Part shown: positions 21,703 to 25,353 of the stretch, piece by piece
How the letters are laid out: every line of letters starts with the position of its first letter
Numbering within the stretch: the stretch's first letter is position 1
Sequence record: OZ195934.1
Direction: 5' to 3' (one strand)
Length of the DNA: 64,000 bases
Made by a program: the position numbers and the translations under genes
Notes under the pieces: model-generated
What the model was told of the DNA's origin: nothing
What the model saw: only the letters and a program-made list of their open reading frames with translations
Database searches by the model: none

Positions 21703-22116
21703 CTACATACCTATTGCGTTTTTAAACATAGCAGAAGCACGACCCATATCAACCACTTTACCAGTAGCTTGCAGAGCTGTACGAAGTTGACCCATGAAGC
21801 GCATGTGATTTGCACCGTTATCGATAACAAATTCAGTCACGAAAGCTTCTAGTTCGTGTTCGCCCATGCGTTCAGGTAGCAGCAACTCAAGTGTTTTGTT
21901 TTCAATCACAAGAATGTCAGCATGGTCGCCTTTGGCGTGCTCAAGTGCCAGTTTGTTGTTATCAAGCGCAGCCGAAATCACCTTGATACATGCTTCGTCA
22001 GAATGATCTTGTTTACGGTCAAGTTCTGCGATAATCACAGCCAGGACAGATGCTACTGGTGCGATGCGTTTCTTACGTGCTTTAAGGCGACGTTCTTTAA
22101 TTTTGTCAATAATCAT
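21703..22116 (-). CDS. YqeY/GatB C-terminal-like protein
   Basis: ENKTLELLLPERMGEHELEAFV..MGQL..VDMGRAS helical pattern. Confidence 0.75.
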   Translation of the reverse strand: MIIDKIKERRLKARKKRIAPVASVLAVIIAELDRKQDHSDEACIKVISAALDNNKLALEHAKGDHADILVIENKTLELLLPERMGEHELEAFVTEFVIDNGANHMRFMGQLRTALQATGKVVDMGRASAMFKNAIGM

Positions 22117-22526
22117 ACTATTCCACTCTCAATTTTTCTATTATCAATTACATGTTTAATCGTGAAGCCCATTTGACTAATGCCTTTCAGTGCTTCTTCG
22201 ATATACGATAACACATCTTTCATGTGTTGAAAAGTAGCAGTTGCAAGTTGTAGTAACTCATCACCCGCCAATGCGTATTTCATTTCACTTTTCTCAACGA
22301 TAAAGTCACAAACTTCATCATCATGTTTGCCGCTGTAATATAACCAACGGTCTTTGCGACACTTTTCCATTTTAAGTTCTGCTTTAAGCAGCATTTGACG
22401 TGCGTCTGCGCGATACCCTAACCATTTAGAGTGCAGTACGGGAATTCGTATTGCTGCTGATTCAAGCATGGTCGTGTCGATTTTCACGTCTTCGTGATAC
22501 TCGGCTTTCAATTGTTTTAAGTTCAT
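22113..22526 (-). CDS. uvsY: UvsY recombination mediator
   Basis: DVKIDTTMLESAAIRIPVLHSKWL, LYYSGK, MGFTIKHVIDNRKIESG. Confidence 0.93.
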   Translation of the reverse strand: MNLKQLKAEYHEDVKIDTTMLESAAIRIPVLHSKWLGYRADARQMLLKAELKMEKCRKDRWLYYSGKHDDEVCDFIVEKSEMKYALAGDELLQLATATFQHMKDVLSYIEEALKGISQMGFTIKHVIDNRKIESGIV

Positions 22527-22544
22527 ATGTCCCTCGCTTCGATC

Positions 22545-22575
22545 ATTATATATACACGCCGGGTTTTGTTAAACA
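22545..22575 (-). promoter_or_regulatory. TGTTTAAC...TATAAT promoter for uvsY
   Basis: -10 at 22545-22550, TGTTTAAC at 22568-22575 on the minus strand. Confidence 0.65.
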
Positions 22576-22625
22576 CTAATCGTTCTAATATCTCTAATAC
22601 CACTAAATCTACTAATTCTACTAAG
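22574..22625. repeat. Six degenerate 9-bp tandem repeats with an invariant CTAA core
   Basis: CTAA at 22576, 22585, 22594, 22603, 22612, 22621. Confidence 0.85.
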
Positions 22626-22656
22626 ATGAGACGGTTTTTTTCCGCTTCGCGCATAC

Positions 22657-22678
22657 AAAAAAAGCCCCGAAGGGCTTT
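22657..22678 (-). terminator. Intrinsic terminator after gp35
   Basis: AAAGCCC-TTCG-GGGCTTTTTTT on the minus strand. Confidence 0.85.
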
Positions 22679-22680
22679 AA

Positions 22681-25353
22681 TCATTTAAGTGCTACGTCAA
22701 CTGCTCGTACATTGTTTTCAAAGAAGCTTGCCACTTTGACTTCAGATGCGATTGGCATACACCATTGCGTTGTACTAGGACTCACTGACCCTTCATCGCG
22801 ACAACGAAGCATCAATATTGACGAGTCATTTTTCCACTGGAAGAACTTTCTCATCGACGAGTTGTAAACACCGACGCCTTTAGAAACCAATTTATCTGGT
22901 ACATCTTCTGGGTTGACAACGCCAAAGTAGTTTCTGAATTTATCAGCAAATTCTTCGACTTGTTGTTGTGTCCAATTATGCGGTAGTATGAATGAATCAT
23001 ACAAAACCCAATCATCGTTGATATCATCCCACTCGCCGTTATCTAACGCGATGTAAGTTGATGTCTCAGTTCCTGTGTAGTCAATAAGCGTATCTTGTAT
23101 CCCGCTTGTGTTTCTCACACGTGCGCTGAAGTAGATATGACCGGCATCTTTACCAGATGCTTGAGCCCACATTGACACGTAATACGGTCTAGTCGGATCG
23201 ATTGTAACGTAATCAAACTCAATTAAGTCTTGAGTTCCGCTTGACACTGTGATCATCTTCGATCTGTCAGATAACGTATGACCGCCCCATTGAACATCGC
23301 CTGCTTCTTTGATTGGCATTTCATATTCGTCATACAGATTTGAGTCTGAACGATAAGCTGAAATCCAACTATCCTGATCCATCGGATCACCTGCAATAGG
23401 CGAATGTGCGAATCGAGAAGCAGCTAGACCATTCAGTGACGATTGAACTGGTGCATCAAAATTAGGTGTTTCGAATCCCGACTTATACACTTGAATGTAA
23501 TCAACGTGGTCGTCAGATTCGATATCAGTCCATATTCCGATTGTGTGCGCGCCTGCTGGAACTTGAACATAAAATTCATGCGTTTCATACATACCACCAC
23601 CGAGTAATGGGCCGTTTTGTCGTCCGACTTCAGTATTCGTTGAGTTGTAAAATCGCAGATTGAACGTTGCTGCCGCGTCGTCATTGTCTTGTTTAGCACG
23701 GAATTTGTATATCAGATATTGCCCCTCAACAACGCCATGATCGCCTAACACAAATCGAGTGTCCGTAATCTTGTTCGTTGTCTCGATGATAGGGCTACCG
23801 AATCCATTCACACCAATTGTCAATCGCGATTCAAAGTTCACATCGATTTCAGCATCGCCATCACTCGGGTGGTCGAAAATGCATCGGTCTGAAATGAAAC
23901 CAAGTTGAGCACTACCAAAACCCGTGTAGCTGTAGCTATACTTGTCAAAGTAACTCGCACCGCGCCATTCTACCGGATTAAAGCGACTCAGAGCAGCGTC
24001 AACGTCTGCATTTGAATAACATGACCCATTAGACACTAAAGCGAAATACTCGTCTGTGAGCGCGTTCATAGCGTTTATGAAGTTGCCGCGTTCAGCCGTG
24101 TTGTTCAAGCGATACGAGTTGTTGATTGCAGGTTCGCCTTCTGCGGTAAACGTAAACAAGTGCATTTTGCCTGTTTCTTTCGCTTCTGGCGCGAGTAAGT
24201 GCGATTCATTGATCACGCCTTCTGCAATTTCAGAACTGCCGTCAGCGACACCACGAGCATATAAACGAACTGTGTTCGATGCACCCTCATTTAAGTGACG
24301 CGTTTCAAGACAGTTTTCAGCGATGCGAATGCCGACTGGTGCGTATACCCACAGCTCAGTGATGTTAACGTCAACACCGGGACCGGGTTGTCCACTGCCG
24401 TTTGCTCGTTGAGCGCCAATAACAAACCACCAACTGGTTGAACCGACTGATCCATCACCGATTGATTGTGTGCCTGTGTTGTATTCAAGACCGCCCCATG
24501 TGCTGTATGTTGAATCTTCTCGAATTGCTTCGTAATCACGCACGCCACCAGACGTAGCATCATAATCACCTGGGTAGTTCTTGATGATCGGTCTGTCAGT
24601 GATAATCGGGTTTGCGATGTATTGCTTGCCCGTCGGAGTTGGCGATGCACTTCCGTACGTCATGTACCAAAACATGTTTGCTGTGTTCAGCGTACTAGGC
24701 GTAGTGAAACGATAGTATCGACGAACCCATCGCTTACCATCGACTACAATATCGTTGCCTGACGATTCGAAAATTTCCCCTGCTGCTGCTGGTGATGCTA
24801 TGGGAGTTCCTGACCCGTCATACCAACGAGCATGAAAAAGAGGGCAGTCGAGATCGTGATCGCTTTCATTCTCATACGCAACCCAACAAGACATTGTATA
24901 CGTCGTATTCGTTCGCAAACGAGTTTGAGGCGTGTCAAATCTATATTGATCTGTAGCGCCTGTAGTGCTACGTTGTAGAATATAATTCGAAGAACCGGGA
25001 TTCGCCATTTCGACGATATCCCATGTTCCGACTATGTTGCCAACGTTCTCTGGTCGAGAGCCGTTAGCAAAGTTAGTGCCGCGCAGAAATTGACCAACGT
25101 CATGCGCAGCAAAGTTATTAGATTGACGCCAGATGTTCGTGACGTTTCTCTCAGGGTAGTGTAATTTGAACTGAAAACGTCCATCTTCACGACGAAAGTC
25201 ATCAAGCCCATTTAGCGCACTGAATTTAGCTTCAATGTCGGGATCAGTCCCGACACTACGCGATTCAGCGTCTGAAGTAAACCAGACGCCTCCAGTTGAA
25301 TCATGGCGAAAAATCAGAAGATAATCGCCATCACGTTTAAGTCTTTCGTACAT
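22681..25353 (-). CDS. gp35: Long tail fibre hinge protein (gp35-like) with extra fibrinogen-like and carbohydrate-binding-like domains
   Basis: Follows gp34; core NEGASNTVRLYARG..FINAMNAL..EIDVNFESRLTIGVNGF resembles T4 gp35; 890 aa against roughly 370 aa in T4. Confidence 0.75.
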   Translation of the reverse strand: MYERLKRDGDYLLIFRHDSTGGVWFTSDAESRSVGTDPDIEAKFSALNGLDDFRREDGRFQFKLHYPERNVTNIWRQSNNFAAHDVGQFLRGTNFANGSRPENVGNIVGTWDIVEMANPGSSNYILQRSTTGATDQYRFDTPQTRLRTNTTYTMSCWVAYENESDHDLDCPLFHARWYDGSGTPIASPAAAGEIFESSGNDIVVDGKRWVRRYYRFTTPSTLNTANMFWYMTYGSASPTPTGKQYIANPIITDRPIIKNYPGDYDATSGGVRDYEAIREDSTYSTWGGLEYNTGTQSIGDGSVGSTSWWFVIGAQRANGSGQPGPGVDVNITELWVYAPVGIRIAENCLETRHLNEGASNTVRLYARGVADGSSEIAEGVINESHLLAPEAKETGKMHLFTFTAEGEPAINNSYRLNNTAERGNFINAMNALTDEYFALVSNGSCYSNADVDAALSRFNPVEWRGASYFDKYSYSYTGFGSAQLGFISDRCIFDHPSDGDAEIDVNFESRLTIGVNGFGSPIIETTNKITDTRFVLGDHGVVEGQYLIYKFRAKQDNDDAAATFNLRFYNSTNTEVGRQNGPLLGGGMYETHEFYVQVPAGAHTIGIWTDIESDDHVDYIQVYKSGFETPNFDAPVQSSLNGLAASRFAHSPIAGDPMDQDSWISAYRSDSNLYDEYEMPIKEAGDVQWGGHTLSDRSKMITVSSGTQDLIEFDYVTIDPTRPYYVSMWAQASGKDAGHIYFSARVRNTSGIQDTLIDYTGTETSTYIALDNGEWDDINDDWVLYDSFILPHNWTQQQVEEFADKFRNYFGVVNPEDVPDKLVSKGVGVYNSSMRKFFQWKNDSSILMLRCRDEGSVSPSTTQWCMPIASEVKVASFFENNVRAVDVALK

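Follow-up and report, generated by a model that had tools for sequence, protein, structure and literature searches.

A conserved six-copy TTAG cassette in KVP40-like Vibrio phages and its possible role as an origin-like module

The repeat array upstream of uvsY in the KVP40-like Vibrio phage D483 is not a feature of uvsY alone. Sequence comparison indicates that it forms the repeat portion of one copy, A, of a six-copy, cis-acting cassette specific to the genus. The first-pass annotation had described the array at uvsY, but it is not special to this gene, being one of six copies per genome. That the array is a real, conserved and non-coding cis-element was supported. The idea that the array is a site read by a factor, at an origin or at a regulatory point, is still the leading one. 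The cassette represents a strongly selected and apparently undescribed family of cis-elements. We found no published description of it in a search that lay outside the original KVP40 genome paper, and the KVP40 GenBank records show no feature at the cassettes.

The array upstream of uvsY and its surroundings

We analysed a window of 64,000 nucleotides, bases 1-64000 of D483. The six CTAA boxes at 22576, 22585, 22594, 22603, 22612 and 22621 were exact and their 9-bp period was confirmed. Every gene in the neighbourhood of the array is on the minus strand, and on this strand the boxes read as TTAG starting at 22624, 22615, 22606, 22597, 22588 and 22579. The pattern TTAG-N5-TTAG-N5-TTAG gave four overlapping matches in the 64-kb window, all of them at the uvsY array, and none in each of 100 dinucleotide-preserving shuffles. 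Tandem Repeats Finder picked up the array with periods of 9 and 18. Its GC content is 26%, with one C in its 54 nt on the minus strand. The hexamer TAGAAT, read across unit 1 and the T of unit 2, resembles a -10 element. The features of the region are listed in Table 1, together with the six sites of the cassette.

Table 1. Features around the uvsY array in the window, and the six cassette sites
Feature	Position	Strand	Basis or remark
gp35-like long-tail-fibre hinge gene, upstream neighbour	22681..25353	-	ORF list; D483 and KVP40 public annotation
Rho-independent terminator of gene 35	22654..22678 (stem 22678-22661)	-	terminator scan, single-strand fold
GCGAAGC motif	22644..22650	-	alignment of the upstream parts of 27 copies
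Inverted repeat (hairpin), weakened: GAAGCGG, A7, CCGTCTC	22628..22648	-	
CATC spacer, inverted repeat to array	22625-22628	-	
Array, six contiguous 9-bp units TTAG+N5 (consensus TTAG-D-R-D-W-W)	22571..22624	-	
uvsY promoter, sigma-70/T4-early type, TTAACA-16-TATAAT	22545..22572	-	11/12 match
uvsY, recombination mediator gene	22113..22526	-	Pfam UvsY, E 6e-49
Annotated 53-aa 'hypothetical protein' VPHD483_0031	22523..22684	-	automatic CDS, public record
Site A	gene 35 / uvsY junction		
Site B	SprT-like gene / nrdH junction		
Site C	start of the operon leading to rIIA		
Site D	gene of unrecognised function / lipoprotein gene		both annotated without known role
Site E	gene 3 / gene 1 junction		
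Site F	gene 12 / wac junction		

The location of the array between the gp35 terminator and the uvsY promoter was confirmed. The earlier statement that it abuts the promoter is also correct, since the last unit overlaps the -35 hexamer of uvsY by 2 nt. What had been called the TGTTTAAC box of uvsY is this -35 element of the sigma-70/T4-early type and not a MotA box. The layout of the promoter is conserved in KVP40, F86, 1.081.O and phi-ST2, and in D483 it is followed by the uvsY Shine-Dalgarno sequence GAGGG at 22531-22535 and the ATG at 22526. On the other side of the array, the gene 35 terminator has a 7-bp stem, a 4-nt loop and a T-run. The GCGAAGC motif next to it is a remnant of an optional AGCG-N2-3-AGCG module, fused here to the 5' arm of the inverted repeat. 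The gene after uvsY (21703-22116, minus strand) encodes a YqeY/GatB-like protein (PF09424, E 5e-9) and overlaps the uvsY stop codon by 4 nt.

The public record places an automatic CDS, VPHD483_0031, across the array. Among the ten genomes compared, its frame has a start codon in D483, K566 and D482 only, and KVP40, F86, 1.081.O, phi-ST2, VS1, QD01 and PVA8 have no start codon in this frame. The predicted protein gave no protein family match. We rejected the coding reading of the array on account of this lack of conservation, with seven of ten genomes having no start in frame. VPHD483_0031 is most likely not a gene and probably an artefact of gene calling. The array can still be called non-coding despite the automatic CDS, because the frame has a start only in the D483 clade. 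The records of this clade annotate a protein of 50-53 aa made of the terminator and the cassette, with ATGA overlaps at both ends; in D483 the stop codon of the gp35-like gene overlaps the ATG of the spurious small ORF. A known RNA family was also considered and rejected, as the single Rfam match fell on the terminator and was at chance level (20 bits, with a gathering score of 50 bits, E 0.37).

Six syntenic copies, their composition and their evolution

The copies of the cassette share an anatomy. The terminator of the upstream gene often comes first, followed by the optional AGCG-N2-3-AGCG module, the inverted repeat, a (T/A)CATC spacer and five to seven TT(A/C)G-N5 units. The canonical inverted repeat is a 9-bp stem around GGCGGAA-AAA-TTCCG. 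The number of units varies between five and seven by 9-bp steps only, and phased TTAG was present in 157 of the 160 units.

A profile built from 27 copies found exactly six copies each in D483, KVP40, K566 and D482 (E 1e-11 to 1e-22), and the next best match had E > 0.5. A pattern scan gave six places in D483 and six in KVP40, and zero to one with the reversed control. Similar scans found 5-8 arrays per genome in about six to eight further genomes of the genus, K566 being a special case. The first-pass annotation had proposed to check conservation in related Vibrio phages. We did so, and found the six sites syntenic in the five genomes in which the flanks were examined. F86 has no cassette at site D, while phage 1.081.O carries two complete tandem cassettes about 155 bp apart at site E, upstream of gene 1. 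The gene upstream of cassette B (D483 63641-64459, plus strand) encodes a protein of the SprT-like metalloprotease family (PF10263, E 9e-18).

All cassettes are co-oriented with their flanking genes, and a terminator precedes the cassette at most sites. Upstream terminators are missing at site D and, in KVP40 and phi-ST2, also at site C. The site D cassette occupies the entire gap from the stop codon to the next ATG, and unit 5 provides the ribosome-binding site (Shine-Dalgarno) of the lipoprotein gene. On the circular map the gaps between cassettes are 26-63 kb. This spacing is more even than chance, with a minimum-gap P of 0.006-0.009 for six random points on a circle, in a test that counts as one observation because D483 and KVP40 are syntenic. 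The cassettes did not coincide with strand switches or with turning points of the GC skew.

At the five variable positions of the 160 units we counted 184 G and 17 C on the gene strand. This asymmetry points to a strand-specific constraint, and a constraint on one strand is hard to explain by double-strand recognition alone. The composition also keeps both single strands of the array unstructured. All six arrays are among the 30 least stable 54-bp loci in D483 and in KVP40, at least 3.3 SD below the genome mean in duplex stability; about 24 other loci per genome melt as easily.

In the inverted repeat, 85% of cells were paired, compared with 35-52% when the partners were slid. Two pairs showed G-C to C-G double changes, in four sequences each. 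Such swaps are what a stem should tolerate and would not be expected for a dyad read by a dimer. The compensated variant of the stem probably arose once or twice and then spread, perhaps via gene conversion. One metagenomic copy of the cassette has an uncompensated stem, and the hairpin in the window is itself weak when folded as a single strand. G-T (G-U) positions are present in the stem. We also tried to assign the hairpin to a strand by its fold energy, which failed as the sense and antisense hairpins are equally stable.

Next to this common plan, the arrays change quickly. Between D483 and KVP40 they are 80-94% identical, with 150-bp flanks at 59-90%, and in four of the six cases the array is more similar than either of its own flanks. 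The comparison of D483 with K566 gave the opposite picture, with arrays at 65-91% and flanks at 86-100%, mostly at or above 97%. In K566, TTCG replaces TTAG in some units of all six arrays, and five of the six share a K566-specific block of three units, TTAGTGATC-TTCGAGATA-TTCGAGATA, or a variant of it with one base changed. In D482 the K566-type block is confined to site D, and the arrays at B, C, E and F are of the D483 type. The TT-G phasing was invariant throughout. From these comparisons of arrays with flanks, the array copies evolve in concert and fast, by gene conversion and mosaic exchange under a long-term constraint.

A protein that reads the array could not be picked out by co-variation. 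About 40 ORFs (about 12% of the genes), including gp15 and gp16, differ between K566 and D483/D482, and with D482 mixing array types no candidate stood out. Since one genome tolerates two array types, tight co-variation of array and reader is argued against. The mosaic breakpoints were not enriched at the cassettes.

We found no cassette in phages outside the genus. The IMG/VR search returned KVP40 and one phi-ST2-like genome only, and six contigs (marine) with the cassette were found in JGI metagenomes; a UvsY-based metagenome scan gave no cassette. None was found in Vibrio among the bacterial genomes scanned, and the T4-like phages of Aeromonas and Shewanella lack an array at uvsY. The pattern scans of bacteria and metagenomes returned many unrelated 9-bp tandem arrays starting with TTAG, for example TTAGTCATC, TTAGTTATC and the Flavobacterium TTAGAYNNN, some arrays of this type being flanked by inverted copies.

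Possible functions of the cassette

By analogy with T4, we tentatively favour the view that the cassette is a T4-origin-like module, with a factor-dependent promoter or loading site beside an unwinding tract. The anatomy, copy number, synteny, orientation, spacing, composition and low duplex stability of the cassettes are observed, as is their conservation with concerted change; factor binding, promoter activity, melting and a link to replication are inferred. Each cassette would be self-contained and of the oriF/oriG kind. A putative factor would dock at the inverted repeat, upstream (at about -30) of a hexamer in unit 1 that resembles a -10 element. The other 45-55 bp, exceptionally easy to melt and without C on the gene strand, would form the zone of unwinding and loading, possibly via an R-loop from a G-rich, C-free transcript. 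The phased TTAG boxes might be read strand-specifically, much as happens with the 13-mer repeats in the unwinding elements of bacteria and plasmids. Replication would then start, or replisomes would be loaded, at the six cassettes around the 254-kb genome. A promoter inside the cassette, together with a tract prone to melting, would match the T4 origins, which consist of a promoter and an unwinding element of about 50 bp (PMC3016281). In favour of the origin-like reading we count the copy number and synteny, the co-orientation with the genes, the even spacing, the low duplex stability, the strand asymmetry, the stem kept through base-pair swaps, the selection on the arrays, the variable distance to the next -35 element, and the position of copy A at the junction of gene 35 and uvsY. 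Against it stand the imperfect -10-like hexamer of some copies and its missing -35 element, the other loci that melt as easily, the weak or uncompensated hairpins and the compensatory changes that may go back to one or two events, the location away from strand switches and skew turning points, the lack of a nearby initiator-like gene or DnaA box, and the two array types of D482.

Promoter-like features can be followed in the aligned copies. Unit 1 is the most conserved unit, and with the T that follows it gives TAGWAT in 24 of the 27 copies. The inverted repeat is centred 18 bp upstream of this hexamer, at about -30, where the T4 MotA box likewise sits. The A at -11 of the -10-like hexamer is missing from three of the 27 aligned copies and from the site A copy of K566/D482. 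We found no -35 element for this hexamer, and the TGCTT MotA box is absent from the cassette. Downstream of the array, the last unit overlaps the -35 element of a GTTTA-type promoter at sites A and B. The next -35 element is 17-31 bp beyond the array at sites C, E and F, and the gap at site D contains no other promoter. Because of this variable distance, the array is not tied to a single activator geometry.

These phages encode AsiA (Pfam E 1e-36 and 4e-50). A MotA_activ search of D483 and KVP40 found no MotA, in a search whose control was also silent. KVP40 has been reported to have no motA, and the AsiA partner and middle promoters of these phages were described as an open question (PMC2988021, PMC1524935). 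Immediately upstream of asiA, ending one base before it, is a gene for a genus-specific protein of 243 aa (phrog_15600; D483 193,185-193,916, plus strand). The identity of the protein across the genus is 77-89%, and its C-terminal tail is acidic. It had no sequence match in Pfam or PDB, its AlphaFold model had a pLDDT of 36, and the Atlas scores gave no information. By its position, the protein is a candidate for the AsiA partner in phages with no MotA. The ORF right after asiA (D483 194,219-194,512, plus strand) encodes a Tad2-like (Thoeris anti-defence 2) domain (PF11195, E 2e-25).

In a more specific version, which we consider unlikely as a whole, the cassette would be the site of a MotA-independent partner of AsiA. 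The putative activator would bind the repeat at -30, transcription would start in unit 2, the C-free TTAG tract would form a persistent R-loop, and the six cassettes would be six origins defined by their sequence. In that case these phages would be the first of the T4 type in which a single recognisable motif is common to all origins.

A purely transcriptional role is nearly as likely as the origin-like module. The cassette could be a phage-specific 'middle' promoter, with the repeat at -30 as the activator site and TAGWAT as the -10 element. Alternatively, it could be an upstream activator or UP-like array for the adjacent early-type promoters. In both cases it would come into use after AsiA has blocked the recognition of the -35 element. 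Such a role would fit the retention of AsiA with no MotA detected or reported, the strong conservation of unit 1, and the gap at site D with no other promoter. It would also fit the placement of the cassettes after terminators and before genes, in the orientation of the downstream gene. Among the genes downstream are uvsY, gene 1, nrdH and the rIIA-side operon, all of them prereplicative in T4. A mere six copies, compared with 58 middle promoters in T4, speak against a transcriptional role, as does the variable distance to the downstream -35 element. T4 middle promoters require an excellent -10 element, whereas some copies of the cassette have none. Moreover, the strict 9-bp phasing of TTAG over 54 bp, the even genomic spacing and the copy before the late gene wac would stay unexplained.

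We consider it improbable that the cassette acts at the level of RNA, where the hairpin and an unstructured UUAG tract in operon or read-through transcripts would serve as a protein-binding lattice or as a site of processing or stability. This would resemble the operator of T4 gene 32, in which a structured nucleation site is followed by repeated U/A motifs up to the ribosome-binding site. In every case the sense strand is the C-free one, which would leave the RNA unstructured, and the stem has its G-T (G-U) positions. The cassettes at site D, and at site C of KVP40 and phi-ST2, have no terminator before them, and at D unit 5 is the Shine-Dalgarno sequence. Against this, the cassette at sites A, B, E and F lies between a strong upstream terminator and a downstream promoter and is therefore expected to be poorly transcribed there. 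The equal stability of the sense and antisense hairpins and the lack of an Rfam match also weigh against an RNA element.

A site of DNA architecture or recombination is slightly less probable again. It would be bound by a repeat-binding protein, for example one like the ribbon-helix-helix centromere binders, or by the small terminase, and it would organise the DNA, initiate packaging, or provide breaks that seed recombination-dependent replication. The even spacing is in favour of this, and contiguous short repeats suit binders that form filaments. The fast concerted overwriting would fit frequent breaks or conversion inside the arrays. Among the roughly 40 genes that differ between K566 and D483/D482 is that for gp16, but this association is weak when about 12% of the genes differ and D482 mixes the array types. 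In addition, T4-type phages are not known to use pac sites for packaging, no partition genes were seen, and the mosaic breakpoints show no enrichment at the cassettes. Repeats with no function, held alike by nothing but gene conversion among the copies, would account for the evident concerted evolution and for a unit number that moves in 9-bp steps from 5 to 7, but it is very improbable given the six syntenic positions retained, arrays that are better conserved than many of their flanks (80-94% against 59-90%), an essentially invariant TTAG phasing, and the strict orientation and strand composition.

Because the origins of T4 lack a common motif, origin usage in T4-type phages has been hard to study by sequence. 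The cassette provides a concrete, clonable target for the questions of the origins and of the AsiA partner, in Vibrio phages that are widely isolated and well studied. Even with another role, it would be an undescribed and strongly selected cis-element that annotation pipelines have mis-called as a gene.

Comparison with known cassettes and origins

The PeSL/PmSL cassettes of T4-like phages, which were described for the KVP40/nt-1 pair (PMC4122927), resemble our cassette in combining an intergenic stem-loop with a promoter and in being repeated and prone to recombination (PMC4122927). They differ in that PeSLs consist of a terminator and an early promoter, are numerous, lie in hyperplastic regions at the borders of indels, and have no TTAG array (PMC4122927). 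Our cassette has its own non-terminator hairpin and a TTAG array, and it occurs in six fixed syntenic copies, several of them at junctions of core genes. We therefore rejected its identity with PeSL.

With the middle promoters of T4, which have a MotA box, the cassette shares an element near -30 of a TAnnnT hexamer and the presence of AsiA. It differs by having a dyad in place of the 9-bp TGCTT box, an imperfect -10 element, and six copies as opposed to about 58. At uvsY itself, the promoter is not of the MotA type but sigma-70-like, with AsiA present and no recognisable MotA (PMC2988021).

With its short direct repeats, spaced evenly along an AT-rich and non-coding tract, the array is reminiscent of the 12-nt iterons of T4 oriE and of the origin repeats of plasmids and bacteria, such as double-strand iterons and the 13-mers of unwinding elements. 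The oriE iterons have no proven role either (PMC3016281). The period of the array is 9 bp and contiguous, in contrast to 12 nt in oriE and 17-22 bp in classical iterons, and the cassette is dispersed in six copies and not confined to one locus as in iteron origins. Scans of six neighbouring proteins without known role at sites B, C and D gave no initiator or DNA-binding family, and for the neighbours at sites A, E and F the public annotation shows no initiator. No DnaA-box-like 9-mer was found within 400 bp of any cassette. The likeness to classical double-strand iterons, as first proposed, thus did not hold, given the contiguous 9-bp period and the lack of a neighbouring initiator gene and of DnaA boxes.

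The closest comparison is with the R-loop origins oriF and oriG of T4, which lie at uvsY and in gene 34 (PMC3016281). Copy A is in the same neighbourhood, at the junction of gene 35 and uvsY, with gene 34 two genes away. Its layout is not that of the T4 origin at uvsY that had been invoked for it. The easily melted 54-bp array lies upstream and not downstream of the uvsY promoter; only relative to a hypothetical promoter within the cassette would it be downstream. Unlike the cassettes, the T4 origins have no motif in common and use MotA-dependent promoters. The cassette is one common unit with phased TTAG boxes and an inverted repeat, and with no MotA box. Both are compact modules with an easily melted tract of about 50 bp, co-oriented with transcription, and they are alike in density, with at least five origins in the 169 kb of T4 (PMC3016281) and six cassettes in 254 kb.
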